A DNA stretch of 64,000 nt, taken from contig NIVC01000149.1 of NCBI GenBank assembly GCA_002269645.1, forward strand, positions 124,001 to 188,000, in the 5' to 3' direction. The DNA comes from Macrostomum lignano (lineage: Eukaryota). Below, one piece after another: positions 29,481-53,668 of this stretch. Numbering within the stretch: position 1 is the first letter of the stretch; each line of letters opens with the position of its first letter. Below the pieces are notes generated by a model, which worked only from the letters and a program-made list of their open reading frames with translations, had not been told where the DNA came from and did not search any database. The position numbers and the translations under genes were made by a program.

Positions 29481-29613
29481 GTGAGTTTTTATTCTGCTGT
29501 TGTGTTTCTCAGACTGATAAATTACTCACATCAATTTACGCACTACGAAATAAGGATTCATTTTTCACCCGGTTAAAAGCATTCGACAATTCAGTATGGT
29601 TTCATAGGTTTAT

Positions 29614-29791
29614 TGACTCGCCAGTGTTGCTGGTCCGCTCTGTGCACAATTCCATTATTGTGCAACAGCATAGCAGTCTGGGGTCAACGCGAGTCTACAG
29701 AACGCGTGAGATTGGCCTTCTCCACGAGTCACTGCCGCTGTGCCTCCTTGCACCTTTTGGCTTGACGACTCACTAACGGCTGATTACAGTC
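29614..29791 (+). ncRNA. Box H/ACA snoRNA, copy 1 of 13 (predicted guide for 18S U1191 and U1290, yeast numbering)
   Basis: Hairpin 1 base GACTCGC/GCGAGTC; H box ACAGAA 29697-29702; hairpin 2 base GATYGGCC/GGCTGATT; ACA 29786-29788 plus 3 nt. Guides GTGTT+GTCAA and CTCCAC+ACTAA, each pocket 14 nt from its box. Confidence 0.85.
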
Positions 29792-30114
29792 TCTGAAATC
29801 TTTTTAGTAATCAGTATGACAAAAACCAAATAATGCTGTAACCTGCTGTAAAACAAAGACTCTAGTTAATATTTAAACAGTTCTTGACTCGCCTACAACT
29901 TAATAGGCCTTAATGCGTTCTTGGTTGGTGGTCTAATAATTATGCGAAAGTCACTTAAAATGGTTAAACTACGAGTAAGTTAAAATTAGGCTGCATAATG
30001 TCAGGTAAAGATATCCACGAACTTACAACGGGCAAAAGCACTCTTGTGATACAAGGCATGAAAAGTGCCTGAACAATACATTTTAGTGCTTTAGCAGACA
30101 GGCAGTTTGTTTGC

Positions 30115-30292
30115 TGACTCGCCAGTGTTGCCGGTCCGCTCTGTGCATAATTTCATTGATGTGCAACAGCATAGCAGTCTGGGGTCAACGCGAGTCTACA
30201 GAACGCGTGAGATCGGCCTTCTCCACGAGTCACTGCCGCTATGCCTCCTTGCACCTTTTGGCTTGACGACTCACTAATGGCTGATTACAGTC
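30115..30292 (+). ncRNA. Box H/ACA snoRNA, copy 2
   Basis: Same fold, boxes and guides; subtype CATAATTTCATTGATGTG. Confidence 0.85.
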
Positions 30293-30649
30293 TGATATTG
30301 TTTTAGCAATAATTTATGGCACGGACCAAACGAAGATTCGACTAGTCGTTAAACATTGACTCAAATTAATATGTAAGCGGTCCACGACTTGATTACCACC
30401 TTAAAATGATAAATAAGTTTGCAATTAGCTCATCTTTTGTCCAAATACATATCGTAAGCTTTGAATTCAAGCAAAACGTTTGATGTGACTTGTAGAGGCC
30501 TTTTTTGAACTTGACAAATCCGATTACAAATAAAGACACTCTCAAGATACTAAACAAGCCACATGTGTAGTGATCAAAGGCATGCAAAATGTACCTCAGC
30601 GAAACAGTGATGTAGCTATTGGACAGACGGGCTAGTCAATGATAGTCTC

Positions 30650-30827
30650 TGACTCGCCAGTGTTGCCGGTCCGCTCTGTGCACAAATCCATTATTGTGCA
30701 ACAGCATAGCAGTCTGGGGTCAACGCGAGTCTACAGAACGCGTGAGATCGGCCTTCTCCACGAGTCACTGCCGCTGTGCCTTCTTGCACCTTTTGGCTTG
30801 ACGACTCACTAACGGCTGATTACAGTC
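30650..30827 (+). ncRNA. Box H/ACA snoRNA, copy 3
   Basis: Same fold, boxes and guides; subtype CACAAATCCATTATTGTG. Confidence 0.85.
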
Positions 30828-31137
30828 AGATATCTTCTTAGTAATCAGTAAATCAAGGACCAAATAGGGTTTAACCAGTCGTGAAACAAAGACTCTAGTT
30901 GTGGGACGATGGAGCCAGTAAGTAGTATAGAAAAAAAGGCGAGCGAAGCGAGAATTTTTTTCTATGCTGCTTACTTTTGCGAAATCGTCCCTGATAAGAT
31001 GTGCAACAGATGTGACACACTAAAAATGACGTTTTTCAACTTTTAAACGCTGCCAATAAAAAACGGTACGACCGATTTGCAAAAAGTTTTTGCCAAAATG
31101 TGTCAAAGACTTAGGGCTACCAGAGCCGCAGTGTTTG

Positions 31138-31173
31138 GTTGCCATGGCAATGCGTTTTGGTTGCCATGGCAAC
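31138..31173. promoter_or_regulatory. Pair of RFX X-box palindromes (GTTGCCATGGCAAT, GTTGCCATGGCAAC); also at 38477-38512 and 44274-44309
   Basis: The second site is an exact match to the symmetric RFX consensus; function not shown. Confidence 0.45.
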
Positions 31174-33044
31174 CAAAAACTGCGTTTTTTCGACATTGTC
31201 AAAAAATTTGATCTCAATTACAGCGGCAGGAAATTATGGCAGCGCTTAGTGAGTGTGCTCAAAAGACGCGGGCATTAAAACGCTACAATGATCCGAAATG
31301 GATTTTTTGATTGTACTTTTACTTCACAGGTAAAAGTACAAAAAACGTGTTTTTTGAGGTCGAAAATTTGGCATTTTTTTCAACTTTGCCTCACCGCAGC
31401 GAAAAGGACGCGCGATAGCGCGGCCTTTGAGCTGCCTCATAGCGTCAATAACACCTGGGGCTGTTTGATGCGCTATAGTTTTTAGGGCTAAAATGTACTT
31501 TTCACATGGCTGCCTATCTGCTGTTTAAAAGTACAAATTTTTAGTGCACTTTTGTGAGGCCTATGGCGTCGAGATGGAAAACTTTATTTTTGCTGTTTTG
31601 CATACCAAATAACTCAAATAGATGTCTTTTAATCGGAAACATCGAGATTTGGCCGATTGGGCCATCAATAACCTGCCCAGGTGCCAAAGAGTGCCTAAAA
31701 ACGACATTTTCGAAAAATTGGGTCACGTTTTTAAAAAGTAGTCCCAAAAAATAAGAAAGTGTTTTATGCTACGGTGTTGAGACTTTAACACAACGTGTCA
31801 AACATATGGAAATTTGTTTTCCTGAATTTTCTAAGCATTTGGACCTACCTGTGCGGAGCAGTGACCCGGAAACCGGGGAAAAAAGAGGCCGGGGGCTCTG
31901 CAGAAAATCAGACGTTGTTAAGAAAAAATTTTTAAAATGGGGCGAATTTTTTCGAGTGTAGTGTCAAATTGTAGCCCATCGGATGCCCTTTTGAATGACA
32001 TAAGACACTCCTGAAAAAACCCCTGTTAACAGGTACTTTTTACCTGTTAAGTGAAAAACGGCCCATTTGGGGGTACAAACTTTGGAGTGGAAAAATAAGA
32101 AATTTTGCGCACCGATTTTTCTGCATTTTCAATATTGTTTAGTCGAATAGCTAAAGTTTCACCGGTCATACGCCAATATGGCTGGAAAATTCGTATTTTT
32201 GAGAAAATTGGCTCCGAATTTTGAGTAGGCCATTTTCGGGCAAATTTTGAGCATACTTTTGCTAATAACTCTGCATTGGCGAGACCTAGAGACTTAAGTT
32301 TGGTGTCTAAAAACAGCACTATGGATGCATTATGCAGCTAAATCAGTTTTGAAAACTGATTCTTAGGTTAACAGGTCTTAATACCTGTTTGATTACCTGT
32401 CAGAACAGGTGAAAATTAATATTTTGGCGCCTAGCAGCCGAAAAATTTGTTGACATAATTTGAAAATGCATTGGATGAATGCGCCTTGATGTTATCTCTG
32501 TAACGACATGCGACTCGTATTTTTAGGTAGAAGCGTTGCGATGCAACGAGCAGAAATGTATGAAAAAGCAGCAAAAATGGTAGAAATGGCTGCTATTAGC
32601 GATATTCGATATAAAATACGTGTACTATAGGCCAACTTAGTAAGCAATTTGTGGCTCAGTGGCAGAGTTAGTTTCCATATAATTGAGTGCTGCAGGGTTC
32701 GATTCCCAAGAGATCCGAAAAATTTTTAGTTTAAAGTTCTTTTAGAGCAAACAGATTTTTAGTATTTTTATTTCTCTAACTATTATGTTTTTTATACAAT
32801 TAAATTACATTTATTTAAATTTATTTTTCTTTTTATACGTATTTAAAGAGTAACAGAGAATCTTTTAGTGCGGCACGTATGATTGTTAGTGCAAAAAGTA
32901 TATTACGATACATGTCGGCAAGCAAGTATTTGATGTCTGGTCGTTTGAAGGCTAGAATATAGTTGTAACATATATACTACAAAGACGTGTTTAGATGTGG
33001 GAAAAGTTCTCGAGGGGTGGTGGAGCGGTGGGGGAGCCAGCCCC

Positions 33045-36000
33045 CCTTTACCACTAGACTAACTAATGCCAGGGGCGTGGGGGCGGCCAGCCCCCCACTA
33101 TACCACTTAGACTAACTAATGCCAGGGGCGTGGGGGGCGGCCAGCCCCCACTATACCACTAGACTAACTAATGCCAGGGGCGTGGGGGCGGCCAGCCCCC
33201 ACTATACCACTAGACTAACTAATGCCAGGGGCGTGGGGGCGGCTAGCCCCCACTATACCACTATACCACTAGACTAACTAATGCCAGGGGCGTGGGGGGC
33301 GGCCAGCCCCCACTATACCACTAGACTAACTAATGCCAGGGGCGTGGGGGCGGCCAGCCCCCACTATACCACTTAGACTAACTAATGCCAGGGGCGTGGG
33401 GGCGGCCAGCCCCCCACTATACCACTAGACTAACTAATTCCAGGGGCGTGGGGGGCGGCCAGCCCCCACTATACTACTAGACTAACTAATGCCAGGGGCG
33501 TGGGGGCGGCGAGCCCCCACTATACCACTAGACTAATAAATGCCAGGGGCGTGGGGGCGGCCAGCCCCCACTATACCACTAGAATAACTAATGCCAGGGG
33601 CGTGGGGGCGGCGAGCCCCCTACTATACCACTAGACTAACTAATGCCAGGGGCGTGGGGGCGGCCAGCCCCCACTATACCACTATACCACTAGACTAACT
33701 AATGCCAGGGGCGTGGGGGGCGGCCAGCCCCCACTATACCACTAGACTAACTAATGCCAGGGGCGTGGGGGGCGGCCAGCCCCCTACTATACCACTAGAC
33801 TAACTAATGCCAGGGGCGTGGGGGGCGGCTAGCCCCCACTATACCACTATACCACTAGACTAACTAATGCCAGGGGCGTGGGGGGCGGCCAGCCCCCCAC
33901 TATACCACTTAGACTAACTAATGCCAGGGGCGTGGGGGCGGCCAGCCCCCACTATACCACTATACCACTAGACTAACTAATGCCAGGGGCGTGGGGGCGG
34001 CCAGCCCCCCACTATACCACTAGACTAACTAATGCCAGGGGCGTGGGGGCGGCCAGCCCCCTACTATACCACTAGACTAACTAATGCCAGGGGCGTGGGG
34101 GCGGCTAGCCCCCCACTATACCACTATACCACTAGACTAACTAATGCCAGGGCGTGGGGGCGGCCAGCCCCCACTATACCACTTAGACTAACTAATGCCA
34201 GGGGCGTGGGGGCGGCCAGCCCCCACTATACCACTAGACTAACTAATGCCAGGGGCGTGGGGGGCGGCCAGCCCCCCACTATACCACTAGACTAACTAAT
34301 GCCAGGGGCGTGGGGGGCGGCTAGCCCCCCACTATACCACTATACCACTAGACTAACTAATGCCAGGGGCGTGGGGGCGGCCAGCCCCCCACTATACCAC
34401 TTAGACTAACTAATGCCAGGGGCATGGGGGCGGCCAGCCCCCACTATACCACTAGACTAACTAATGCCAGGGGCGTGGGGGCGGCCAGCCCCCACTATAC
34501 CACTAGACTAACTAATGCCAGGGGCGTGGGGGCGGCTAGCCCCCCACTATACCACTATACCACTAGACTAACTAATGCCAGGGGCGTGGGGGCGGCCAGC
34601 CCCCACTATACCACTTAGACTAACTAATGCCAGGGGCGTGGGGGGCGGCCAGCCCCCCACTATACCACTATACCACTAGACTAACTAATGCCAGGGGCGT
34701 GGGGGGCGGCTAGCCCCCCACTATACCACTATACCACTAGACTAACTAATGCCATGGGCGTGGGGGGCGGCCAGCCCCCCACTATACCACTAGACTAACT
34801 AATGCCAGGGGCGTGGGGGGCGGCCAGTCCCCCACTATACCACTAGACTAACTAATGCCAGGGGCGTGGGGGGCGGCCAGTCCCCCACTATACCACTAGA
34901 CTAACTAATGCCAGGGGCGTGGGGGGCGGCCAGTCCCCCACTATACCACTAGACTAACTAATGCCAGGGGCGTGGGGGGCGGCCAGCCCCCACTATACCA
35001 CTAGACTAACTAATTCCAGGGGCGTGGGGGCGGCCAGCCCCCACTATACTACTAGACTAACTAATGCCAGGGGCGTGGGGGCGGCGAGCCCCCACTATAC
35101 CACTAGAATAACTAATGCTAGGGGCGTGGGGGGCGGCCAGCCCCCACTATACCACTAGAATAACTAATGCTAGGGGCGTGGGGCGGCGAGCCCCCTACTA
35201 TACCACTAGACTAACTAATGCCAGGGGCGTGGGGGGCGGCCAGCCCCCACTATACCACTATACCACTAGACTAACTAATGCCAGGGGCGTGGGGGCGGCC
35301 AGCCCCCCACTATACCACTAGACTAACTAATGCCAGGGGCGTGGGGGGCGGCCAGCCCCCTACTATACCACTAGACTAACTAATGCCAGGGGCGTGGGGG
35401 GCGGCTAGCCCCCACTATACCACTATACCACTAGACTAACTAATGCAGGGGCGTGGGGGCGGCCAGCCCCCCACTATACCACTTAGACTAACTAATGCCA
35501 GGGGCGTGGGGGGCGGCCAGCCCCCACTATACCACTATACCACTAGACTAACTAATGCCAGGGGCGTGGGGGGCGGCCAGCCCCCCACTATACCACTAGA
35601 CTAACTAATGCCAGGGGCGTGGGGGCGGCCAGCCCCCTACTATACCACTAGACTAACTAATGCCAGGGGCGTGGGGGCGGCTAGCCCCCACTATACCACT
35701 ATACCACTAGACTAACTAATGCCAGGGGCGTGGGGGGCGGCCAGCCCCCACTATACCACTTAGACTAACTAATGCCAGGGGCGTGCGGGGCGGCCAGCCC
35801 CCCACTATACCACTAGACTAACTAATGCCAGGGGCGTGGGGGCGGCCAGCCCCCCACTATACCACTAGACTAACTAATGCCAGGGGCGTGGGGGGCGGCT
35901 AGCCCCCACTATACCACTATACCACTAGACTAACTAATGCCAGGGGCGTGGGGGGCGGCCAGCCCCCCACTATACCACTTAGACTAACTAATGCCAGGGG

Positions 36001-38128
36001 CATGGGGGGCGGCCAGCCCCCCACTATACCACTAGACTAACTAATGCCAGGGCGTGGGGGCGGCCAGCCCCCACTATACCACTAGACTAACTAATGCCAG
36101 GGGCGTGGGGGCGGCTAGCCCCCACTATACCACTATACCACTAGACTAACTAATGCCAGGGGCGTGGGGGGCGGCCAGCCCCCACTATACCACTTAGACT
36201 AACTAATGCCAGGGGCGTGGGGGCGGCCAGCCCCCCACTATACCACTATACCACTAGACTAACTAATGCCAGGGGCGTGGGGGCGGCTAGCCCCCACTAT
36301 ACCACTATACCACTAGACTAACTAATGCCATGGGCGTGGGGGGCGGCCAGCCCCCACTATACCACTAGACTAACTAATGCCAGGGGCGTGGGGGCGGCCA
36401 GTCCCCCACTATACCACTAGACTAACTAATGCCAGGGGCGTGGGGGGCGGCCAGTCCCCCACTATACCACTAGACTAACTAATGCCAGGGGCGTGGGGGC
36501 GGCCAGTCCCCCACTATACCACTAGACTAACTAATGCCAGGGGCGTGGGGGCGGCCAGCCCCCACTATACCACTAGACTAACTAATTCCAGGGGCGTGGG
36601 GGCGGCCAGCCCCCACTATACTACTAGACTAACTAATGCCAGGGGCGTGGGGTGCGGCGAGCCCCCCACTATACCACTAGAATAACTAATGCTAGGGGCG
36701 TGGGGGCGGCCAGCCCCCCACTATACCACTAGAATAACTAATGCTAGGGGCGTGGGGGCGGCGAGCCCCCTACTATACCACTAGACTAACTAATGCCAGG
36801 GGCGTGGGGGGCGGCCAGCCCCCCACTATACCACTATACCACTAGACTAACTAATGCCAGGGGCGTGGGGGCGGCCAGCCCCCCACTATACCACTAGACT
36901 AACTAATGCCAGGGGCGTGGGGGCGGCCAGCCCCCTACTATACCACTAGACTAACTAATGCCAGGGGCGTGGGGGGCGGCTAGCCCCCACTATACCACTA
37001 TACCACTAGACTAACTAATGTCAGGGGCGTGGGGGGCGGCCAGCCCCCACTATACCACTTAGACTAACTAATGCCAGGGGCGTGGGGGGCGGCCAGCCCC
37101 CACTATACCACTATACCACTAGACTAACTAATGCCAGGGGCGTGGGGGGCGGCCAGCCCCCACTATACCACTAGACTAACTAATGCCAGGGGCGTGGGGG
37201 CGGCCAGCCCCCTACTATACCACTAGACTAACTAATGCCAGGGGCGTGGGGGCGGCTAGCCCCCACTATACCACTATACCACTAGACTAACTAATGCCAG
37301 GGGCGTGGGGGCGGCCAGCCCCCCACTATACCACTTAGACTAACTAATGCCAGGGCGTGCGGGGCGGCCAGCCCCCACTATACCACTAGACTAACTAATG
37401 CCAGGGGCGTGGGGGGCGGCCAGCCCCCCACTATACCACTAGACTAACTAATGCCAGGGGCGTGGGGGCGGCTAGCCCCCCACTATACCACTATACCACT
37501 AGACTAACTAATGCCAGGGGCGTGGGGGGCGGCCAGCCCCCCACTATACCACTTAGACTAACTAATGCCAGGGGCATGGGGGCGGCCAGCCCCCCACTAT
37601 ACCACTAGACTAACTAATGCCAGGGGCGTGGGGGGCGGCCAGCCCCCCACTATACCACTAGACTAACTAATGCCAGGGGCGTGGGGGCGGCTAGCCCCCA
37701 CTATACCACTATACCACTAGACTAACTAATGCCAGGGGCGTGGGGGCGGCCAGCCCCCACTATACCACTTAGACTAACTAATGCCAGGGGCGTGGGGGCG
37801 GCCAGCCCCCACTATACCACTATACCACTAGACTAACTAATGCCAGGGGCGTGGGGGGCGGCTAGCCCCCACTATACCACTATACCACTAGACTAACTAA
37901 TGCCATGGGCGTGGGGGCGGCCAGCCCCCACTATACCACTAGACTAACTAATGCCAGGGGCGTGGGGGGCGGCCAGTCCCCCACTATACCACTAGACTAA
38001 CTAATGCCAGGGGCGTGGGGGCGGCCAGTCCCCCACTATACCACTAGACTAACTAATGCCAGGGCGTGGGGGGCGGCCAGCCCCCACTATACCACTAGAC
38101 TAACTAATGCCAGGGGCGTGGGGGGCTT
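33045..38128. repeat. GC-rich ~51-bp satellite array 1 (ACTAGACTAACTAATGCCAGGGGCGTGGGGGCGGCCAGCCCCCACTATACC)
   Basis: About 95-100 tandem units; higher-order period ~1.575 kb. Confidence 0.98.
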
Positions 38129-38239
38129 TTTAGCTCTCAATTTAGGTTAAATAAATAGATGTCATAGCCATAAACAATAATGGACACAATATATACCCAT
38201 CGTCCCACCTTTGAAGACGACAGCGTCTTCATTCACTAG

Positions 38240-41200
38240 TTGTGGGACGATGAGCCAGTAAGTAGTATAGAAAAAAAGGCGAGCGAAGCGAGAATTTTTT
38301 TCTATGCTGCTTACTTTTGCGAAATCGTCCCTGATAAGATGTAGCAACGGTGTCACATAGGAAAATGACGTTTTTCAACTTTTAAACGCTGCCAATAAAA
38401 AACGGTGCAACCGATTTACAAACAGTTTTTGCCAAAATGTGTCAAAGACCTAGCACTATCGGATGCACAATAGTTGGTTGCCATGGCAATGCGTTTTGGT
38501 TGCCATGGCAACCAAAAACTGCGTTTTTTCAACTTTTTCAAAAAATTTGATCTTAATTACAGCGGCAGGAAATTATGGCAGCGCTTAGTGAGTGTGCTCA
38601 ATAGACGCGGGCATTTGAACGCTACAATGATCTGAAATGGATTTTTTGATTGTACTTTCACTTTACAGGTAAAAGTACAAAAAACGTGTTTTTTGAGGTC
38701 GAAAAATTGGCATTTTTTCCAACTTTGCCTCACCGCAGCAAAAAGGACGCGCGATAGCGCGGCCTTTGAGCTGCCTCCTAGCGTTGACAACACTTGGGGC
38801 TGTCTGATGCGCTAGATTTTTTTTGGCTAAAATGTACTTTTCACATGGCTGCCTATCTGCTGTTTAAAAGTACAAATTTTTAGTGCACTTTTGTGAGGCT
38901 TATGGCGTCGAGATGGAAAACTTTATTTTTGCTGTTTTGTATACCAAATAACTCAAATGGATGTCTTTTAATCGGAAACATCGAGATTTGGCCGATTGGG
39001 CCATCAATAACCTGCCCAGGTGCCAAAGAGTGCCTAAAAACGACATTTTCGAAAAATTGGGTCACGTTTTTAAAAAGTAGTCCCAAAAAATAAGGAAGCG
39101 TTTTATGCTACGGTGTTGAGACTTTAACACAACGTGTCAAACATTTGGAAATTTGTTTTCCTGAATTTTCTAAGCATTTGGACCTACCTGTGCGGAGCAG
39201 TGACCCGGAAACCAGGGAAAAAAGGGCCGGGGCTCTGCAGAAAATCAAACGTTGTTAAGGAAATTTTTTTAAAATGGGGCGAATTTTTTCGAGTGTAGTG
39301 TCAAATTGTAGCCCATCGGATGCCCTTTTGAATGACATAAGACACTCTGGAAAAAACCCCTGTTAACAGGTACTTTTTACCGGTTAAGTGAAAAACGGCC
39401 CATTTGGGGGTACAAACTTTGAAGTCGAAAAATAAGAAATTTTGCGCACCGATTTTTCTGCATTTTCAATATTGTTTAGTCGAATAGCTAAAGTTTCACC
39501 GGTCATACGCCAATATGGCTGGAAAATTCGTATTTTTGAGCAAACTGCATCTGATTTTTAAAAATGCAATCTATACCACTATACCACTAGACTAACTAAT
39601 GCCAGGGGCGTGGGGGGCGGCCAGCCCCCCACTATACCACTAGACTAACTAATGCCAGGGGCGTGGGGGGCGGCCAGCCCCCACTATACCACTAGACTAA
39701 CTAATGCCAGGGGCGTGGGGGCGGCCAGCCCCCCACTATACCACTAGACTAACTAATGCCAGGGGCGTGGGGGCGGCCAGCCCCCCACTATACCACTAGA
39801 CTAATAAATGCCAGGGCGTGGGGGGCGGCCAGCCCCCCACTATACCACTAGACTAACTAATGCCAGGGGCGTGGGGGGCGGCCAGCCCCCACTATACCAC
39901 TATACCACTAGACTAACTAATGCCAGGGGCGTGGGGCGGCCAGCCCCCACTATACCACTAGACTAACTAATGCCAGGGGCGTGGGGGCGGCCAGCCCCCC
40001 ACTATACCACTAGACTAACTAATGCCAGGGGCGTGGGGGCGGCCAGCCCCCCACTATACCACTAGACTAACTAATGCCAGGGGCGTGGGGGCGGCCAGCC
40101 CCCACTATACCACTAGACTAATAAATGCCAGGGGCGTGGGGGCGGCCAGCCCCCCACTATACCACTAGACTAACTAATGCCAGGGGCGTGGGGGCGGCCA
40201 GCCCCCCACTATACCACTAGACTAACTAATGCCAGGGGCGTGGGGGGCCAGCCCCCCACTATACCACTAGACTAATAATGCCAGGGGCGTGGGGGCGGCC
40301 AGCCCCCCACTATACCACTAGACTAACTAATGCCAGGGGCGTGGGGGCGGCCAGCCCCCCACTATACCACTATACCACTAGACTAACTAATGCCAGGGGC
40401 GTGGGGGCGGCCAGCCCCCACTATACCACTAGACTAACTAATGCCAGGGGCGTGGGGGCGGCCAGCCCCCCACTATACCACTAGACTAACTAATGCCAGG
40501 GGCGTGGGGGCGGCCAGCCCCCCACTATACCACTAGACTAACTAATGCCAGGGGCGTGGGGGGCGGCCAGCCCCCACTATACCACTAGACTAACTAATGC
40601 CAGGGGCGTGGGGGCGGCCAGCCCCCCACTATACCACTAGACTAACTAATGCCAGGGGCGTGGGGGCGGCCAGCCCCCCACTATACCACTATACACTAGA
40701 CTAACTAATGCCAGGGGCGTGGGGGCGGCCAGCCCCCCACTATACCACTAGACTAACTAATGCCAGGGGCGTGGGGGCGGCCAGCCCCCACTAACCACTA
40801 GACTAACTAATGCCAGGGGCGTGGGGGGCGGCCAGCCCCCACTATACCACTAGACTAACTAATGCCAGGGGCGTGGGGGGCGGCCAGCCCCCACTAACCA
40901 CTAGACTAACTAATGCCAGGGGCGTGGGGGCGGCCAGCCCCCACTATACCACTAGACTAACTAATGCCAGGGGCGTGGGGGGCGGCCAGCCCCCCACTAT
41001 ACCACTAGACTAACTAATGCCAGGGGCGTGGGGGCGGCCAGCCCCCACTATACCACTATACCACTAGACTAACTAATGCCAGGGGCGTGGGGGCGGCCAG
41101 CCCCCCACTATACCACTAGACTAACTAATGCCAGGGGCGTGGGGGCGGCCAGCCCCCACTATACCACTAGACTAACTAATGCCAGGGGCGTGGGGGGCGG

Positions 41201-44036
41201 CCAGCCCCCCACTATACCACTTAGACTAACTAATGCCAGGGGCGTGGGGGCGGCCAGCCCCCCACTATACCACTAGACTAACTAATGCCAGGGGCGTGGG
41301 GGCGGCCAGCCCCCCACTATACCACTAGACTAACTAATGCCAGGGGCGTGGGGGCGGCCAGCCCCCACTATACCACTATACCACTAGACTAACTAATGCC
41401 AGGGGCGTGGGGGCGGCCAGCCCCCACTATACCACTAGACTAACTAATGCCAGGGGCGTGGGGGCGGCCAGCCCCCCTATACCACTATACCACTAGACTA
41501 ACTAATGCCAGGGGCGTGGGGGCGGCTAGCCCCCACTATACCACTAGACTAACTAATGCCAGGGGCGTGGGGGCGGCCAGCCCCCTACTATACCACTAGA
41601 CTAACTAATGCCAGGGGCGTGGGGGCGGCCAGCCCCCACTATACCACTATACCACTAGACTAACTAATGCCAGGGGCGTGGGGGGCGGCCAGCCCCCCAC
41701 TATACCACTTAGACTAACTAATGCCAGGGGCGTGGGGGCGGCCAGCCCCCCACTATACCACTAGACTAACTAATGCCAGGGGCGTGGGGGCGGCCAGCCC
41801 CCACTATACCACTAGACTAACTAATGCCAGGGGCGTGGGGGCGGCCAGCCCCCACTATACCACTATACTAGACTAACTAATGCCAGGGGCGTGGGGGCGG
41901 CCAGCCCCCACTATACCACTAGACTAACTAATGCCAGGGGCGTGGGGGCGGCCAGCCCCCCACTATACCACTAGACTAACTAATGCCAGGGGCGTGGGGG
42001 GCGGCCAGCCCCCCACTATACCACTAGACTAACTAATGCCAGGGGCGTGGGGGGCGGCCAGCCCCCCACTATACCACTATACCACTAGACTAACTAATGC
42101 CAGGGGCGTGGGGGCGGCCAGCCCCCCACTATACCACTTAGACTAACTAATGCCAGGGGCGTGGGGGCGGCCAGCCCCCACTATACCACTATACCACTAG
42201 ACTAACTAATGCCAGGGGCGTGGGGGGCGGCCAGCCCCCACTATACCACTAGACTAACTAATGCCAGGGCGTGGGGGGCGGCCAGCCCCCACTATACCAC
42301 TAGACTAACTAATGCCAGGGGCGTGGGGGGCGGCCAGTCCCCCACTATACCACTAGACTAACTAATGCCAGGGGCGTGGGGGGCGGCCAGCCCCCACTAT
42401 ACCACTAGACTAACTAATGCCAGGGGCGTGGGGGCGGCCAGCCCCCACTATACCACTAGACTAACTAATGCCAGGGGCGTGGGGGGCGGCCAGCCCCCAC
42501 TATACCACTAGACTAACTAATGCCAGGGGCGTGGGGGCGGCCAGCCCCCACTATACCACTAGACTAACTAATGCCAGGGGCGTGGGGGCGGCGAGCCCCC
42601 ACTATACCACTAGAATAACTAATGCTAGGGGCGTGGGGGCGGCCAGCCCCCACTATACCACTAGACTAACTAATGCCAGGGGCGTGGGGGCGGCCAGCCC
42701 CCTACTATACCACTAGACTAACTAATGCCAGGGGCGTGGGGGGCGGCCAGCCCCCACTATACCACTATACCACTAGACTAACTAATGCCAGGGGCGTGGG
42801 GGGCGGCCAGCCCCCACTATACCACTAGACTAACTAATGCCAGGGGCGTGGGGGCGGCCAGCCCCCTACTATACCACTAGACTAACTAATGCCAGGGGCG
42901 TGGGGGCGGCCAGCCCCCACTATACCACTATACCACTAGACTAACTAATGCCAGGGGCGTGGGGGCGGCCAGCCCCCACTATACCACTAGACTAACTAAT
43001 GCCAGGGGCGTGGGGGGCGGCCAGCCCCCACTATACCTATACTAGACTAACTAATGCCAGGGGCGTGGGGGGCGGCCAGCCCCCACTATACCACTAGACT
43101 AACTAATGCCAGGGGCGTGGGGGGCGGCCAGCCCCCACTATACCACTATACCACTAGACTAACTAATGCCAGGGGCGTGGGGGGCGGCCAGCCCCCCACT
43201 ATACCACTAGACTAACTAATGCCAGGGGCGTGGGGGGCGGCCAGCCCCCACTATACCACTAGACTAACTAATGCCAGGGGCGTGGGGGCGGCCAGCCCCC
43301 ACTATACCACTAGACTAACTAATGCCAGGGGCGTGGGGGGCGGCCAGCCCCCACTATACCACTATACTAACTAATGCCAGGGGCGTGGGGGGCGGCCAGC
43401 CCCCACTATACCACTAGACTAACTAATGCCAGGGGCGTGGGGGGCGGCCAGCCCCCCACTATACCACTAGACTAACTAATGCCAGGGGCGTGGGGGGCGG
43501 CCAGCCCCCACTATACCACTAGACTAACTAATGCCAGGGGCGTGGGGGCGGCCAGCCCCCACTATACCACTAGACTAACTAATGCCAGGGGCGTGGGGGG
43601 CGGCAGCCCCCACTATACCACTAGACTAACTAATGCCAGGGGCGTGGGGGGCGGCCAGCCCCCACTATACCACTATACCACTAGACTAACTAATGCCAGG
43701 GGCGTGGGGGCGGCCAGCCCCCACTATACCACTATACCTACTAACTAACTAATGGGGGCGTGGGGGCGGCCAGCCCCCACTATACCACTAGACTAACTAA
43801 TGCCAGGGGCGTGGGGGCGGCCAGTCCCCCACTATACCACTAGACTAACTAATGCCAGGGGCGTGGGGGGCGGCCAGCCCCCACTATACCACTAGACTAA
43901 CTAATGCCAGGGGCGTGGGGGGCTTTTTAGCTCTCAATTTAGGTTAAATAAATAGATGTCATAGCCATAAACAATAATGGACACAATATATACCCATCGT
44001 CCCACCTTTGAAGACGACAGCGTCTTCATTCACTAG
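38240..44036 (+). mobile_element. Non-autonomous Helentron-like element, unit 2 (head-to-tail)
   Basis: Junction CACTAG|TTGTGGGACGATG at 38239/38240 and again at 44036/44037; left arm shorter than in unit 1. Confidence 0.8.
39572..43925. repeat. GC-rich ~51-bp satellite array 2
   Basis: Same monomer as array 1. Confidence 0.98.
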
Positions 44037-47000
44037 TTGTGGGACGATGAGCCAGTAAGTAGTATAGAAAAAAAGGCGAGCGAAGCGAGAATTTTTTTCT
44101 ATGCTGCTTACTTTTGCGAAATCGTCCCTGATAAGATGTAGCAACGGTGTCACATAGGAAAATGACGTTTTTCAACTTTTAAACGCTGCCAATAAAAAAC
44201 GGTGCAACCGATTTACAAACAGTTTTTGCCAAAATGTGTCAAAGACCTAGCACTATCGGATGCACAATAGTTGGTTGCCATGGCAATGCGTTTTGGTTGC
44301 CATGGCAACCAAAAACTGCGTTTTTTCAACTTTTTCAAAAAATTTGATCTTAATTACAGCGGCAGGAAATTATGGCAGCGCTTAGTGAGTGTGCTCAATA
44401 GACGCGGGCATTTGAACGCTACAATGATCTGAAATGGATTTTTTGATTGTACTTTCACTTTACAGGTAAAAGTACAAAAAACGTGTTTTTTGAGGTCGAA
44501 AAATTGGCATTTTTTCCAACTTTGCCTCACCGCAGCAAAAAGGACGCGCGATAGCGCGGCCTTTGAGCTGCCTCCTAGCGTTGACAACACTTGGGGCTGT
44601 CTGATGCGCTAGATTTTTTTTGGCTAAAATGTACTTTTCACATGGCTGCCTATCTGCTGTTTAAAAGTACAAATTTTTAGTGCACTTTTGTGAGGCTTAT
44701 GGCGTCGAGATGGAAAACTTTATTTTTGCTGTTTTGTATACCAAATAACTCAAATGGATGTCTTTTAATCGGAAACATCGAGATTTGGCCGATTGGGCCA
44801 TCAATAACCTGCCCAGGTGCCAAAGAGTGCCTAAAAACGACATTTTCGAAAAATTGGGTCACGTTTTTAAAAAGTAGTCCCAAAAAATAAGGAAGCGTTT
44901 TATGCTACGGTGTTGAGACTTTAACACAACGTGTCAAACATTTGGAAATTTGTTTTCCTGAATTTTCTAAGCATTTGGACCTACCTGTGCGGAGCAGTGA
45001 CCCGGAAACCAGGGAAAAAAGGGCCCGGGGCTCTGCAGAAAATCAAACGTTGTTAAGGAAATTTTTTTAAAATGGGGCGAATTTTTTCGAGTGTAGTGTC
45101 AAATTGTAGCCCATCGGATGCCCTTTTGAATGACATAAGACACTCTGGAAAAAACCCCTGTTAACAGGTACTTTTTACCGGTTAAGTGAAAAACGGCCCA
45201 TTTGGGGTACAAACTTTGAAGTCGAAAAATAAGAAATTTTGCGCACCGATTTTTCTGCATTTTCAATATTGTTTAGTCGAATAGCTAAAGTTTCACCGGT
45301 CATACGCCAATATGGCTGGAAAATTCGTATTTTTGAGCAAACTGCATCTGATTTTTAAAAATGCAATCTATACCACTATACCACTAGACTAACTAATGCC
45401 AGGGGCGTGGGGGCGGCCAGCCCCCACTATACCACTAGACTAACTAATGCCAGGGGCGTGGGGGCGGCCAGCCCCCCACTATACCACTAGACTAACTAAT
45501 GCCAGGGGCGTGGGGGCGGCCAGCCCCCCACTATACCACTAGACTAACTAATGCCAGGGGCGTGGGGGGCGGCCAGCCCCCCACTATACCACTAGACTAA
45601 TAAATGCCAGGGGCGTGGGGGCGGCCAGCCCCCACTATACCACTAGACTAACTAATGCCAGGGGCGTGGGGGGCGGCCAGCCCCCCACTATACCACTATA
45701 CCACTAGACTAACTAATGCCAGGGGCGTGGGGGCGGCCAGCCCCCCACTATACCACTAGACTAACTAATGCCAGGGGCGTGGGGGGCGGCCAGCCCCCCA
45801 CTATACCACTAGACTAACTAATGCCAGGGGCGTGGGGCGGCCAGCCCCCCACTATACCACTAGACTAACTAATGCCAGGGGCGTGGGGGGCGGCCAGCCC
45901 CCCACTATACCACTAGACTAATAAATGCCAGGGGCGTGGGGGGGGGCCCGCCCCCCACTATACCACTAGACTAACTAATGCCAGGGGCGTGGGGGCGGCC
46001 AGCCCCCCACTATACCACTAGACTAACTAATGCCAGGGGCGTGGGGGGCGGCCAGCCCCCCACTATACCACTAGACTAATAAATGCCAGGGGCGTGGGGG
46101 GCGGCCAGCCCCCCACTATACCACTAGACTAACTAATGCCAGGGGCGTGGGGGGCGGCCAGCCCCCACTATACCACTATACCACTAGACTAACTAATGCC
46201 AGGGGCGTGGGGGCGGCCAGCCCCCCACTATACCACTAGACTAACTAATGCCAGGGGCGTGGGGGCGGCCAGCCCCCCAGTAAACCACTAGACTAACTAA
46301 TGCCAGGGGCGTGGGGGGCGGCTAGCCCCCCACTATACCACTAGACTAACTAATGCCAGGGGCGTGGGGGCGGCCAGCCCCCCACTAAACCACTAGACTA
46401 ACTAATGCCAGGGGCGTGGGGGGCGGCCAGTCCCCCACTATACCACTAGACTAACTAATGCCAGGGGCGTGGGGGGCGGCCAGCCCCCCACTATACCACT
46501 AGACTAACTAATGCCAGGGGCGTGGGGGGCGGCCAGCCCCCCACTATACCACTATACCACTAGACTAACTAATGCCAGGGGCGTGGGGGCCGGCCAGCCC
46601 CCCACTATACCACTAGACTAATAAATGCCAGGGGCGTTGGGGGGCGGCCAGCCCCTACTATACCACTAGACTAACTAATGCCAGGGGCGTGGGGGCGGCC
46701 AGCCCCCACTATACCACTTAGACTAACTAATGCCAGGGGCGTGGGGGGCGGCCAGCCCCCCACTATTCCACTAGACTAACTAATGCCAGGGGCGTGGGGG
46801 GCGGCCAGCCCCCCACTATACCACTAGACTAACTAATGCCAGGGGCGTGGGGGGCGGCTAGCCCCCACTATACCACTATACCACTAGACTAACTAATGCC
46901 AGGGGCGTAGGGGGCGGCCAGCCCCCCACTATACCACTTAGAATAACTAATGCCAGGGGCGTGGGGGGCGGCCAGCCCCCCCCCTATACCACTATACCAC

Positions 47001-47873
47001 TAGACTAACTAATGCCAGGGGCGTGGGGGGCGGCTAGCCCCCCACTATACCACTAGACTAACTAATGCCAGGGGCGTGGGGGCCGGCCAGCCCCCCACTA
47101 TACCACTAGACTAATAAATGCCAGGGGCGTTGGGGGGGCGGCCAGCCCCCTACTATACCACTAGACTAACTAATGCCAGGGGCGTGGGGGGCGGCCAGCC
47201 CCCCACTATACCACTTAGACTAACTAATGCCAGGGGCGTGGGGGCGGCCAGCCCCCCACTATTCCACTAGACTAACTAATGCCAGGGGCGTGGGGGGCGG
47301 CCAGCCCCCCACTATACCACTAGACTAACTAATGCCAGGGGCGTGGGGGGCGGCTAGCCCCCCACTATACCACTATACCACTAGACTAACTAATGCCAGG
47401 GGCGTAGGGGGCGGCCAGCCCCCCACTATACCACTTAGAATAACTAATGCCAGGGGCGTGGGGGGCGGCCAGCCCCCCCCCCCCCTATACCACTATACCA
47501 CTGGACTAACTAATGCCAGGGGCGTGGGGGCGGCTAGCCCCCCACTATACCACTATACCACTAGACTAACTAATGCCAGGGGCGTGGGGGGCGGCTAGCC
47601 CCCCACTATACCACTATACCACTAGACTAACTAATGCCAGGGGCGTGGGGGGCGGCCAGCCCCCCACTATACCACTAGATTAACTAATGCCAGGGGCGTG
47701 GGGGGCGGCCAGTCCCCCACTATACCACTAGACTAACTAATGCCAGGGGCGTGGGGGGGCTTTTTAGCTCTCAATTTAGGTTAAATAAATAGATGTCATA
47801 GCCATAAACAATAATGGACACAATATAAACCATCGTCCCACCTTTGAAGACGACAGCGTCTTCATTTTACTAG
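44037..47873 (+). mobile_element. Non-autonomous Helentron-like element, unit 3
   Basis: Left arm near-identical to unit 2; ends CCATCGTCCCAC...GAAGACGACAGCGTCTTC-ATTTTACTAG|TT, followed by the resumed snoRNA spacer. Confidence 0.8.
45368..47762. repeat. GC-rich ~51-bp satellite array 3
   Basis: Same monomer as array 1. Confidence 0.98.
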
Positions 47874-48124: not shown

Positions 48125-48302
48125 TGACTCGCCAGTGTTGCCGGTCCGCTCTGTGCACAATTTCATTATTGTGCAACAGCATAGCAGTCTGGGGTCAACG
48201 CGAGTCTACAGAACGCGTGAGATCGGCCTTCTCCACGAGTCGCTGCCGCTGTGCCTTCTTGCACCTTTTGGCTTGACGTCTCACTAACGGCTGATTACAG
48301 TC
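48125..48302 (+). ncRNA. Box H/ACA snoRNA, copy 4
   Basis: Same boxes and guides; one mismatch in the hairpin-2 upper stem (GTCTC). Confidence 0.8.
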
Positions 48303-48650: not shown

Positions 48651-48828
48651 TGACTCGCCAGTGTTGCCGGTCCGCTCTGTGCACAAATCCATTATTGTGC
48701 AACAGCATAGCAGTCTGGGGTCAACGCGAGTCTACAAAACGCGTGAGATCGGCCTTCTCCACGAGTCACTGCCGCCGTGCCTTCTTGCACCTTTTGGCAT
48801 GACGACTCACTAACGGCTGATTACAGTC
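48651..48828 (+). ncRNA. Box H/ACA snoRNA, copy 5
   Basis: H box variant ACAAAA still fits ANANNA; guides intact. Confidence 0.82.
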
Positions 48829-49122: not shown

Positions 49123-49300
49123 TGACTCGCCAGTGTTGCCGGTCCGCTCTGTGCACAATTTCATTATTGCGCAACAGCATAGCAGTCTGGGGTCAACGCG
49201 AGTCTACAGAACGCGTGAGATCGGCCTTCTCCACGAGTCACTGCCGCTGTGCCTCCTTGCACCTTTTGGCTTGACGACTCACTAACGGCTGATTACAGTC
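49123..49300 (+). ncRNA. Box H/ACA snoRNA, copy 6
   Basis: Same fold, boxes and guides. Confidence 0.85.
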
Positions 49301-49626: not shown

Positions 49627-49804
49627 TGACTCGCCAGTGTTGCCGGTCCGCTCTGTGCATAATTTCATTGATGTGCAACAGCATAGCAGTCTGGGGTCAA
49701 CGCGAGTCTACAGAACGCGTGAGATCGGCCTTCTCCACGAGTCACTGCCGCTATGCCTCCTTGCACCTTTTGGCTTGACGACTCACTAATGGCTGATTAC
49801 AGTC
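49627..49804 (+). ncRNA. Box H/ACA snoRNA, copy 7
   Basis: Same fold, boxes and guides. Confidence 0.85.
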
Positions 49805-50161: not shown

Positions 50162-50339
50162 TGACTCGCCAGTGTTGCCGGTCCGCTCTGTGCACAAATC
50201 CATTATTGTGCAACAGCATAGCAGTCTGGGGTCAACGCGAGTCTACAGAACGCGTGAGATCGGCCTTCTCCACGAGTCACTGCCGCTGTGCCTTCTTGCA
50301 CCTTTTGGCTTGTCGACTCACTAACGGCTGATTACAATC
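50162..50339 (+). ncRNA. Box H/ACA snoRNA, copy 8
   Basis: Same fold; ends ACA-ATC. Confidence 0.85.
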
Positions 50340-50998
50340 TGTTGTTTTTGAGAATGGTTAATTGCCATTTTCATATTATATTTCTTTGGTGATTAGGTTG
50401 AAAGAATTGAAAAACGAATAGTAATTTCTCGAAACTGCATTAGACTTTAAGGCTGGTAATTAGGTACGATGCGGAGTTGCTCAGCGGTAAACGCGTCTTA
50501 CTCTCTTGCCAAACTCCTAGTTCGACTCCATGCGCGACCGCATTCATTTGTTGCTTTTACACAGAAAATTTCCCGTAGCTATCTTACGATTCACCCATGA
50601 GAGCCAACCCAAGACACAGAGTGTAGATGTTTGAGGATTAGAAGGTCGGAGTCGATGTACAGTGTACACCTTGTATGAGCATGCTTTCTGAAGACCACAG
50701 GATGGACAGAATTGCCTCAGCGCTGGTTGTGAGACGATGTCGCCGATACCGTTGCACCAGAGTGTCCACAACCTTCCAGATATTGTTGTTAGGGCTGTTA
50801 AGTGATAAATGTTCTACTGGTAATAAAGAAGCAAAGATAATTACAGATAAATCATTGTATGCCATGTAGTGTCTAAAGAAAGGTGTCTTGCGGAGCAATG
50901 GATCATTTTAATAGTGACAAAACGCCCATTATGCAATAAGATTACCAGGCAGTCATCCGCGTAGCATTGGCTTATACACCATTGGTTACTTAGGCTGC

Positions 50999-51176
50999 TG
51001 ACTCGCCAGTGTTGCCGGTCCGCTCTGTGCATAATTTCATTGATGTGCAACAGCATAGCAGTCTGAGGTCAACGCGAGTCTACAGAACGCGTGAGATCGG
51101 CCTTCTCCACGAGTCACTGCCGCTATGCCTCCCTGCACCTTTTGGCTTGACGACTCACTAATGGCTGATTACAGTT
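50999..51176 (+). ncRNA. Box H/ACA snoRNA, copy 9
   Basis: Same fold; ends ACA-GTT. Confidence 0.85.
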
Positions 51177-51533
51177 TGATATTGTTTTAGCAATAATTTA
51201 TGGCACGGACCAAACGAAGATTCGACTAGTCGTTAAACATTGACTCAAATTAATATGTAAGCGGTCCACGACTTGATTACCACCTTAAAATGATAAATAA
51301 GTTTGCAATTAGCTCATCTTTTGTCCAAATACATATCGTAAGCTTTGAATTCAAGCAAAACGTTTGATGTGACTTGTAGAGGCCTTTTTTGAACTTGACA
51401 AATCCGATTACAAATAAAGACACTCTCAAGATACTAAACAAGCCACATGTGTAGTGATCAAAGGCATGCAAAATGTACCTCAGCGAAACAGTGATGTAGC
51501 TATTGGACAGACGGGCTAGTCAATGATAGTCTC

Positions 51534-51710
51534 TGACTCGCCAGTGTTGCCGGTCCGCTCTGTGCACAAATCCATTATTGTGCAACAGCATAGCAGTCTG
51601 GGTCAACGCGAGTCTACAGAACGCGTGAGATCGGCCTTCTCCACGAGTCACTGCCGCTGTGCCTTCTTGCACCTTTTGGCTTGTCGACTCACTAACGGCT
51701 GATTACAATC
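51534..51710 (+). ncRNA. Box H/ACA snoRNA, copy 10
   Basis: Same fold; one G fewer in the G-run outside the guide. Confidence 0.83.
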
Positions 51711-52369
51711 TGTTGTTTTTGAGAATGGTTAATTGCCATTTTCATATTATATTTCTTTGGTGATTAGGTTGAAAGAATTGAAAAACGAATAGTAATTTCT
51801 CGAAACTGCATTAGACTTTAAGGCTGGTAATTAGGTACGATGCGGAGTTGCTCAGCGGTAAACGCGTCTTACTCTCTTGCCAAACTCCTAGTTCGACTCC
51901 ATGCGCGACCGCATTCATTTGTTGCTTTTACACAGAAAATTTCCCGTAGCTATCTTACGATTCACCCATGAGAGCCAACCCAAGACACAGAGTGTAGATG
52001 TTTGAGGATTAGAAGGTCGGAGTCGATGTACAGTGTACACCTTGTATGAGCATGCTTTCTGAAGACCACAGGATGGACAGAATTGCCTCAGCGCTGGTTG
52101 TGAGACGATGTCGCCGATACCGTTGCACCAGAGTGTCCACAACCTTCCAGATATTGTTGTTAGGGCTGTTAAGTGATAAATGTTCTACTGGTAATAAAGA
52201 AGCAAAGATAATTACAGATAAATCATTGTATGCCATGTAGTGTCTAAAGAAAGGTGTCTTGCGGAGCAATGGATCATTTTAATAGTGACAAAACGCCCAT
52301 TATGCAATAAGATTACCAGGCAGTCATCCGCGTAGCATTGGCTTATACACCATTGGTTACTTAGGCTGC

Positions 52370-52547
52370 TGACTCGCCAGTGTTGCCGGTCCGCTCTGTG
52401 CATAATTTCATTGATGTGCAACAGCATAGCAGTCTGAGGTCAACGCGAGTCTACAGAACGCGTGAGATCGGCCTTCTCCACGAGTCACTGCCGCTATGCC
52501 TCCCTGCACCTTTTGGCTTGACGACTCACTAATGGCTGATTACAGTC
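52370..52547 (+). ncRNA. Box H/ACA snoRNA, copy 11
   Basis: Same fold, boxes and guides. Confidence 0.85.
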
Positions 52548-52904
52548 TGATATTGTTTTAGCAATAATTTATGGCACGGACCAAACGAAGATTCGACTAG
52601 TCGTTAAACATTGACTCAAATTAATATGTAAGCGGTCCACGACTTGATTACCACCTTAAAATGATAAATAAGTTTGCAATTAGCTCATCTTTTGTCCAAA
52701 TACATATCGTAAGCTTTGAATTCAAGCAAAACGTTTGATGTGACTTGTAGAGGCCTTTTTTGAACTTGACAAATCCGATTACAAATAAAGACACTCTCAA
52801 GATACTAAACAAGCCACATGTGTAGTGATCAAAGGCATGCAAAATGTACCTCAGCGAAACAGTGATGTAGCTATTGGACAGACGGGCTAGTCAATGATAG
52901 TCTC

Positions 52905-53082
52905 TGACTCGCCAGTGTTGCCGGTCCGCTCTGTGCACAAATCCATTATTGTGCAACAGCATAGCAGTCTGGGGTCAACGCGAGTCTACAGAACGCGTGA
53001 GATCGGCCTTCTCCACGAGTCACTGCCGCTGTGCCTTCTTGCACCTTTTGGCTTGACGACTCACTAACGGCTGATTACAGTC
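52905..53082 (+). ncRNA. Box H/ACA snoRNA, copy 12
   Basis: Same fold, boxes and guides. Confidence 0.85.
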
Positions 53083-53409
53083 TGATATCTTTTTAGTAAT
53101 CAGTATATCAAGGACCAAATAGGGTTTAACCAGTCGTTAAACAAAGACTCTAGTTAATATTTAAACAGTTCTTGGCTCGCCTACAACTTAATAGACTTTA
53201 GTGCGTTCTTGGTTTGTGCCTTTAATAACTATGGGAAGTCACTTTAAAATGATTAAACTACGAGTTAGTTAAAATTAGGCTGCATAATGTCAGGTGAAGA
53301 TATTTACCAAATTACAACTTACAAAAGCACTTTTTTAGTGATCAAGTGCATTAAAAATGCCTGACAAATGCAAAGTATCTAGTGCTTTAGCAACAGGCAG
53401 TTTGTTTGC

Positions 53410-53587
53410 TGACTCGCCAGTGTTGCCGGTCCGCTCTGTGTATAATTCCAATATTGTGCAACAGCATAGCAGTCTGGGGTCAGCGCGAGTCTACAGAACG
53501 CGTGAGATCGGCCTTCTCCACGAGTCACTGCCGCTGTGCCTTCTTGCACCTTTTGGCTTGACGACTCACTAACGGCTGATTACATTA
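53410..53587 (+). ncRNA. Box H/ACA snoRNA, copy 13
   Basis: Guide variant GTCAG keeps pairing via G-U; ends ACA-TTA, ~80 nt before the 3' splice site. Confidence 0.82.
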
Positions 53588-53668
53588 CTTACTTTACATG
53601 GTAGAGCAAAGATTAGGAGCGAAGACAGTCAAGAAAAAAATGGAACCCGCCACCGCTAATATTCCCAG

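Follow-up and report, generated by a model that had tools for sequence, protein, structure and literature searches.

What is a 178-nt element doing 13 times over in one intron of a lipoxygenase (LOX)-like gene? The question is posed by a 64,000-nt stretch of the genome of the flatworm Macrostomum lignano (GenBank assembly GCA_002269645.1, contig NIVC01000149.1, positions 124,001 to 188,000, forward strand), which is called the window here and to which all coordinates refer. Our preferred answer, held with a probability of roughly 0.72, is that the repeats form a tandemly amplified gene that encodes a small nucleolar RNA (snoRNA) of the box H/ACA class, carried in the sense orientation by the last intron of an intact flatworm gene for a lipoxygenase-like protein that probably lacks iron.

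Copy number, orientation, and extent of the array

Repeat finding, a regex, and an nhmmer profile, applied to the 64-kb window, agreed on exactly 13 full-length copies of the 178-nt element, all on the plus strand. Neither the regex nor the profile found partial or degenerate relics elsewhere in the window. The array was unannotated until now, and it is confirmed as real. Its copies, each located by both regex and nhmmer, are as follows.

29614..29791, plus strand, predicted snoRNA copy c01; starts 133 nt after the donor
30115..30292, plus strand, predicted snoRNA copy c02; core identical to c07
30650..30827, plus strand, predicted snoRNA copy c03; core identical to c12
48125..48302, plus strand, predicted snoRNA copy c04
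48651..48828, plus strand, predicted snoRNA copy c05; H box ACAAAA
49123..49300, plus strand, predicted snoRNA copy c06
49627..49804, plus strand, predicted snoRNA copy c07
50162..50339, plus strand, predicted snoRNA copy c08
50999..51176, plus strand, predicted snoRNA copy c09
51534..51710, plus strand, predicted snoRNA copy c10; 177 nt, its GGGG run short of one G
52370..52547, plus strand, predicted snoRNA copy c11
52905..53082, plus strand, predicted snoRNA copy c12; reference anatomy
53410..53587, plus strand, predicted snoRNA copy c13; 81 nt from its end to the acceptor; A74 of the guide is G here, wobble compatible

The core is 178 nt long in every copy but c10. Its identity among copies is 92 to 100%, against an average of 61 to 62% for the 150 nt on either side, which excludes chance resemblance of the copies. 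Units are ∼470 to 535 bp long, apart from two of 836 to 837 bp; the spacers (294 to 659 nt) are mutually homologous but strongly diverged, and the array proper occupies ∼7 kb. A preliminary description of this DNA had reported 13 copies, sense to the host and within one predicted intron; the regex, nhmmer, and the gene model all bear this out, and the intron coordinates given there (donor at 29481, acceptor at 53668) proved exact, the distances to the outermost cores, given as ∼130 and ∼80 nt, being 133 and 81 nt. It had also called the array CRISPR-like in appearance but not CRISPR, and we concur. A CRISPR array would need direct repeats of ∼23 to 47 nt, unique spacers of similar size, and a prokaryote; here, the repeats measure 178 nt, the spacers are long and homologous to one another, and the setting is a spliced eukaryotic gene.

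Predicted box H/ACA architecture

By its architecture, boxes, and pocket geometry, the repeat is well supported as a box H/ACA-type snoRNA, the class that had been proposed for it. The minimum-free-energy fold predicts the order hairpin, ACAGAA, hairpin, ACA in each unit, and the centroid structure agrees on the two hairpins. Hairpin 1 (nt 2 to 82) closes with the lower stem GACUCGC/GCGAGUC. One nucleotide later, in the hinge, comes the H box ACAGAA (nt 84 to 89; ANANNA), which reads ACAAAA in c05 and whose three A positions are invariant across copies. Hairpin 2 (nt 97 to 172; lower stem GAUCGGCC/GGCUGAUU) runs directly into an ACA (nt 173 to 175) that is invariant in all copies. Core conservation sets in 1 to 2 nt ahead of hairpin 1 and stops exactly at the ACA, the next 3 nt being variable. 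With c12 as the reference, the predicted parts are the following.

52906-52986, plus strand, hairpin 1
52913-52920 and 52973-52979, plus strand, strands of the 5' pocket
52988-52993, plus strand, H box ACAGAA
53001-53076, plus strand, hairpin 2
53009-53016 and 53063-53068, plus strand, strands of the 3' pocket
53077-53079, plus strand, ACA

Standard pairs fill 98% of 505 pair cells among the 11 distinct copies; with the 3' partners slid, the figure drops to 31 to 39%. Every one-sided pair change among copies is C to U and yields a G-U pair.

Guide pockets and 18S rRNA targets

Eukaryotic ribosomal DNA (rDNA) was fetched with a pattern joining both suspected target sequences; the two occur 84 nt apart in >120 eukaryotic contaminant contigs of prokaryotic assemblies. 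As a reference we used one of these (locus L003), which according to Rfam is a complete unit of small subunit (SSU), 5.8S, and large subunit (LSU) rRNA, and each pocket was tested for bipartite pairing with all 1405 of its uridines. The 5' pocket (CAGUGUUG / GGUCAAC) found its best site at SSU U1187 (UUGAC-U-CAACAC) and the 3' pocket (UUCUCCAC / ACUAAC) at SSU U1286 (UUAGU-U-G-GUGGAG). Each forms 11 Watson-Crick pairs there; the runner-up pairing scores were 10.0 (5' pocket, G-U pairs included) and 7 (3' pocket). The two uridines lie 99 nt apart, the same spacing as positions 1191 and 1290 of yeast 18S rRNA. In yeast, 1191 becomes m1acp3-pseudouridine (m1acp3-Psi) through snR35 and then Emg1 and Tsr3, and 1290 is a pseudouridine (Psi) guided by snR83 (PMC5699541). 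The human counterpart of 1191 is Psi1248, with SNORA13 as its guide (bioRxiv 10.1101/840132).

Both target uridines lie 14 nt from their box, the H box for the 5' pocket and the ACA box for the 3' pocket. This is a canonical distance: H/ACA guides place the target U 14 to 16 nt upstream of the H or ACA box. When pockets were shuffled, 5.9% (5') and 2.2% (3') of trials reached 11 pairs somewhere in the rRNA, counting any site, known Psi or not. Known Psi sites make up only a few percent of rRNA uridines. Because both pockets fall on known Psi sites in the right geometry, chance is a very unlikely explanation. In all 13 copies the box positions are invariant, as are 20 of the 21 guide positions that pair with rRNA, and the sole guide change (A74 to G in c13) retains a G-U pair.

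Complementarity thus supports a match between the 5' pocket and the m1acp3-Psi site, the helix-31 uridine of 18S rRNA (position 1191 in yeast, 1248 in human). Pairing with both sides of this uridine, the internal loop in the 5' hairpin would direct its pseudouridylation, the first step toward m1acp3-Psi, which is the job of snR35 in yeast and SNORA13 in humans. The 3' pocket matches the helix-34 uridine equivalent to yeast Psi1290, and the internal loop of the 3' hairpin would pair around UUAGU-U-G-GUGGAG, so that the RNA is a predicted dual guide. The preliminary description had correctly named the helix-31 m1acp3-Psi site as a target; it had overlooked the second pocket. As judged from pairing and geometry, the RNA is well supported as a dual-guide functional counterpart of snR35/SNORA13 with the Psi1290 pocket of snR83 added, an analogue by target.

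A separate observation concerns the rDNA itself. Eukaryotic 18S rDNA is present as contamination in more than 120 contigs (loci L003 to L122) that are catalogued as bacterial or archaeal genomes and metagenome-assembled genomes (MAGs); L003 is filed as a "Nitrosomonadales MAG" yet holds the complete eukaryotic unit.

The host gene and its last intron

The host open reading frame (ORF) is intact, encoding 689 amino acids in six exons with GT-AG at every junction and a coding GC content of 57%.

23931..24229, plus strand, exon 1; start codon; PLAT/LH2 domain (Pfam PF01477, E = 9e-6); GT donor
25246..25608, plus strand, exon 2; AG/GT sites, in frame
26208..26978, plus strand, exon 3; lipoxygenase core (Pfam PF00305, E = 3.8e-26); aligns with coral 8R-LOX 3fg1; HRLMHH
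28450..28801, plus strand, exon 4; QGSAAWNPQ where the iron-ligand motif QHAAVNFSQ is expected
29317..29480, plus strand, exon 5 (penultimate); aligns with the C-terminal region of coral 8R-LOX
29481..53668, plus strand, last intron; 24,188 nt, GT...AG, phase 2; holds the array
53669..53789, plus strand, last exon; ...PERMLNHLVV then stop; aligns to the LOX C terminus ...PERIPNS

The last intron opens with GTGAGT, its acceptor AG ends at 53668, and the junction keeps the frame (GA/G = Glu, then FKEEL...). Coral 8R-lipoxygenase, whose structure is solved, and human ALOX15B match the host at E values of 1e-46 to 1e-49. Since these alignments run through the last exon, the exon beyond the 24-kb intron is the true C terminus. 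The closest homologues are lipoxygenase-domain proteins: one from a Logan assembly shows 61%, that of the trematode Echinostoma caproni 58%, and that of the cestode Dibothriocephalus latus 51%, which by itself makes a flatworm the probable source of the gene.

The first two iron-binding histidines are retained (HRLMHH), and three of the five ligands are lost: in the alignment, the third His falls on Gly/Ser and the Asn on Trp (QHAAVNFSQ to QGSAAWNPQ), and the C-terminal residue is Val, not Ile. The protein is therefore probably iron-less, and "apparently non-catalytic," the label it had been given, is fair because the third His, the Asn, and the C-terminal Ile are all replaced. The E. caproni homologue has a likewise altered iron-ligand motif (AGSALRLPMF). 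The same description had found a host outside ribosome biogenesis unexpected; this does not stand. The array is predicted to be hosted by a protein-coding LOX-like gene, and human SNORA13 sits in the long non-coding RNA (lncRNA) EPB41L4A-AS1 (PMC12975130).

History of the array

The copies fall into two blocks, c01 to c03 and c04 to c13, separated by an inserted element.

30901..47841, no strand, 16.9-kb insertion between the two blocks of the array; three copies in tandem with 12-bp inverted repeats GTGGGACGATGG and a 52-bp satellite in each

The perfect 12-bp inverted repeat GTGGGACGATGG has six matches against 0.12 expected. These bound the three element copies at 30901+/38208-, 38242+/44005-, and 44039+/47841-, with ∼33 bp between copies. 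The 52-bp GC-rich satellite (33028-47758) amounts to ∼270 units in all, and its length differs per element copy. Homology between array spacers is broken exactly at 30901 and 47841. The element is non-coding and has the look of a non-autonomous DNA transposon that itself underwent tandem duplication within the snoRNA array. It makes up ∼70% of the last intron; without it, the intron would measure ∼7.2 kb and be nearly all array. The boundaries of the "24-kb intron" of the preliminary description are thus exact, but the insertion accounting for most of that length had been missed.

Several copies are very recent. The segment 29608-30824 (c01 to c03) is 99.0% identical to 49117-50336 (c06 to c08), and a 1371-bp two-copy unit recurs across 49624-53084 at 99.5% identity, so that ∼7 of the 13 copies belong to segmental duplicates of 99 to 99.5% identity. 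Because of these duplicates, there are ∼6 to 7 old independent unit lineages rather than 13; the earlier count holds, although the recent origin of many copies had escaped notice. Gapped alignment of five old lineages puts the divergence at 3.8% for cores and 40% for spacers. Units are mosaic, with exchange points at the cores; in c09, for example, the upstream flank is unique and the downstream flank is identical to that of c02. Mosaics of this sort, with breakpoints at cores, are the mark of unequal crossing-over and of gene conversion. The array may have grown from one ancestral intronic copy by unequal crossing-over, with the cores serving as homology anchors.

Near-identical blocks also raise the question of whether the assembly has over-expanded or mis-joined them, the true array being shorter. 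Blocks of 1.2 to 2.1 kb at 99.0 to 99.5% identity, next to long satellites, do assemble poorly. Nonetheless, the duplicated blocks differ by 8 to 9 substitutions and 1 to 2 indels each and have distinct junctions, and at least six clearly different unit lineages would survive any collapse. For these reasons, we consider an assembly artefact very unlikely.

A weightier alternative is that concerted evolution here is neutral: exchange between cores, by unequal crossing-over and gene conversion, would enlarge and homogenize the array, copy number would have no dosage meaning, one or a few copies would suffice, and some might be silent or poorly processed. The abundance of recent duplicates, the mosaic units with breakpoints at cores (as in c09), and the landing of a large repeat element in the array without apparent harm are all consistent with this. 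However, every copy keeps its boxes, stems, and guides, there is no degenerate relic, and the old lineages retain 96% core identity against 60% in the spacers. We rate neutrality as a serious possibility, at rather less than even odds.

Evidence against the snoRNA assignment

Several results weigh against reading the array as 13 working copies of a dual-guide snoRNA. The pair-cell check found no compensatory double changes among the copies, although covariation says nothing here, given how similar the copies are. A z-score of -1.7 for the fold is modest. No Rfam family was matched at the gathering score in the whole window, at E ≤ 1 over 27 kb (28 to 55 kb), or at E ≤ 10 with one copy; the scans returned chance matches only (Leu leader and psRNA14). 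The lack of an Rfam match is expected, because a Schistosoma survey recovered U3 as the sole known snoRNA with an unambiguous homologue, and flatworm snoRNAs generally escape homology search (PMC2770079). Variable columns are fewer at critical positions (1 of 27) than elsewhere (24 of 151), a difference that is marginal (one-sided p = 0.07). The equivalence of the targets rests on universally conserved rRNA segments, read from the 18S rRNA of another organism (L003). Finally, the 99% duplication tract over c01 to c03 begins just 6 nt before the c01 core, and gene conversion confined to cores may partly explain core identity, in place of selection on each copy. Since such homogenization may contribute, the function of every copy is not proven.

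To these must be added the absence of orthologues of the array RNA among the other LOX loci, metagenomes, and protein collection that were searched. Exact 22- and 30-mers of the core were not found in viral or metagenome contigs. A degenerate dual-guide pattern gave 18 matches in metagenomes, which we discarded as chance, all of them being without the third element. The open frame through the core had no match in a collection of 5.8 billion proteins. In the LOX loci of E. caproni (L001), the Logan assembly (L002), D. latus (L123), and Mytilus (L124), the profile and regex gave chance matches only; the E. caproni locus is uninformative because its contig ends ∼600 nt into the orthologous last intron.

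Release of the RNAs

Under the snoRNA reading, the array would be transcribed inside the host pre-mRNA, and H/ACA proteins (in this class of RNA, dyskerin/Cbf5, Nop10, Nhp2, and Gar1) would assemble on each unit cotranscriptionally. Units would then be freed from the excised intron by spacer cleavage and exonucleolytic trimming down to the protected ribonucleoproteins, as has been proposed for the rice and Drosophila clusters. Internal units would need the spacer cleavage, because exonucleases entering from the ends of the debranched intron free the outermost units only. The preliminary description had put this "polycistronic" endonucleolytic release too firmly, since about half of the units have donor-like and acceptor-like motifs that would allow mini-introns.

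According to that alternative, each snoRNA occupies a mini-intron of ∼300 nt between short non-coding pseudo-exons, and the large intron is removed stepwise or alternatively. Ordinary debranching and trimming would then release the snoRNAs with no need of an endonuclease, in the manner of SNORD115/116 and UHG-type hosts. Upstream of c02, c04, c07, and c13, at 110 to 116 nt and hence close to the 133 nt separating the true donor from c01, stands a donor-like CAG/GTAAAG or CAG/GTGAAG that scores 7/9, equal to the real donors of the host. A pyrimidine-rich ...TTTTAG or ...TTTTTGAG follows most cores after 13 to 20 nt, and animals usually have one such gene per intron (PMC1821038). The donor-like motif is, however, missing before c03, c05, c06, c08, c10, and c12 and weak for c09 and c11; AT-rich spacers give rise to such motifs easily; and inclusion of a pseudo-exon would wreck the host reading frame. 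We judge this route unlikely. Still, splice-site-like motifs recurring at fixed positions around about half of the copies make some internal or recursive splicing a possibility. The donor-like motifs are at 30005, 48011, 49514, and 53294, and acceptor-like ones at, e.g., 50352, 51723, and 53096.

A bolder version, which we think distinctly unlikely, would have the units as self-contained mini-introns removed stepwise, with one snoRNA per splice, or the iron-less LOX-like gene retained largely as a platform for the sole guide of m1acp3-Psi and the helix-34 Psi, with copy number setting stoichiometry. A link between rRNA-modification dosage and expression of the host gene is likewise speculation.

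The copies could also be independently transcribed snoRNA genes that merely happen to lie in an intron, each with an upstream promoter element, as in genes of the snRNA type or the snoRNA genes of nematodes and plants. A partly conserved GTAGTGATC ... CCTGA lies ∼55 to 85 nt upstream of most cores, including several otherwise diverged lineages. Its distance to the core varies, though; it is missing before c01 and a poor match in c05 and c09, and its similarity does not exceed the residual homology of the spacers (40% divergence). Moreover, all copies are on the host strand and the terminal ones are near the splice sites. Separate promoters therefore strike us as very unlikely, and we retain release from the host intron as the preferred account.

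The motif GTAGTGATC...(∼25 nt)...CCTGA (e.g., 49068-49110, 48040-48085, and 53335-53375) recalls degenerate box C and D sequences, or else a promoter element, and in some units it is flanked by complementary ends (GCACUU/AAGUGC). A second, box C/D-like RNA in the spacers was considered and rejected, given the non-canonical boxes, variable position, and lack of an Rfam match.

Comparison with known snoRNAs and clusters

Like yeast snR35 and human SNORA13 (ACA13), the array RNA is predicted to be a box H/ACA RNA with a pocket for the helix-31 uridine at the canonical box distance. It has no detectable sequence or covariance-model similarity to either (Rfam, E ≤ 10, one copy), and the repeat did not match the Rfam models of SNORA13 or snR35. 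It differs from both in its length of 178 nt, in a second hairpin that is also a good rRNA guide, and in being present as 13 tandem copies rather than as a single gene. With yeast snR83, which guides 18S Psi1290 and Psi1415, it shares the target uridine of its 3' pocket; the partner pocket differs (1415 in snR83, the 1191 equivalent here), and there is no sequence similarity between the two. Reassortment of guide elements between snoRNAs is already known (PMC2780460).

Arrangements of this kind were known before. Clusters of snoRNA genes within introns have been described for rice (PMC2780460) and, for H/ACA RNAs of Drosophila melanogaster, by Huang et al. in 2004 (as cited in PMC5932544). These clusters are like the array in that a single intron contains several snoRNAs in the orientation of the host, and these are often isoforms of the same H/ACA snoRNA. 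With several snoRNAs in one intron, release cannot follow the simple route of one lariat and one snoRNA (PMC2780460; PMC5932544). The array fits this pattern, with at least two predicted snoRNA genes in the host sense within one intron of a homology-supported, predicted gene model. It stands apart in its phylum (Platyhelminthes), in its 13 near-identical dual-guide copies, and in being split by a 16.9-kb repeat element. The Drosophila clusters are reportedly smaller.

The mammalian SNORD115/116 and SNORD113/114 arrays likewise comprise tandem copies in one long host transcript that arose by unit duplication. They number dozens of copies and are box C/D, mostly orphan, and imprinted, with one snoRNA per intron of a repeated non-coding exon-intron unit. 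The array RNA, in contrast, is of H/ACA type with clear rRNA targets, and a single predicted intron of a coding gene contains all of its copies. Polycistronic clusters of yeast and plants resemble the array in that a precursor holds several snoRNAs and endonucleolytic entry in the spacers would be needed; these clusters are independent transcription units of mostly different snoRNAs, and no Rnt1-type signal was identified in the array spacers. In yeast, RNase III/Rnt1 and Rat1 process such clusters (Qu et al. 1999, as cited in PMC2780460).

What is new here is an unannotated dual guide, a copy number unusually high for one intron, and a poorly charted phylum. For a phylum whose snoRNAs have mostly eluded annotation by homology, the locus provides a concrete and well-supported H/ACA snoRNA. 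The targets assigned to this RNA are two 18S pseudouridines that are universally conserved and lie near the decoding center, one of them the m1acp3-Psi precursor. The locus also adds a lophotrochozoan example to a several-snoRNAs-in-one-intron layout documented until now for rice and Drosophila. The 13 near-identical units carry distinguishable single-nucleotide polymorphisms and would be a natural substrate for studying how internal copies are released. With its mosaic units and breakpoints at cores, the array illustrates concerted evolution of a small-RNA gene. Nothing here overturns current understanding, and the ideas on dosage and host coupling are speculation.

Other features of the window

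The long spacers after c08 and c10 contain ∼300 extra bases with a tRNA-like stretch, in which A-box- and B-box-like sequences can be recognized (GGAGTTGCTCAGCGGTAAA...GTTCGACTCC).

50473-50529, tRNA-like stretch after c08
51844-51900, tRNA-like stretch after c10

ARAGORN calls no tRNA here, and the tRNA scan was negative; the stretch is possibly a fragment of a tRNA-derived short interspersed element.

Other introns of the LOX gene each have their own, unrelated minisatellite, and two further tandem arrays lie downstream of the gene, the second of them (97% identity) running off the window.

24273-25185, minisatellite, 29 bp x32
25662-26014, minisatellite, 23 bp x15
27102-28300, minisatellite, 16 bp x75
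28845-29186, minisatellite, 26 bp x13
55175-56225, downstream tandem array, 23 bp x47
57179-64000, downstream tandem array, 33 bp, >207 copies

Upstream of the LOX gene, minus-strand ORFs at 198-617 and 1030-2364 encode ankyrin-repeat-like and SH2-domain-like peptides, and a 27-bp tandem repeat in the coding frame (1308-2030) lies inside the ORF at 1030-2364.

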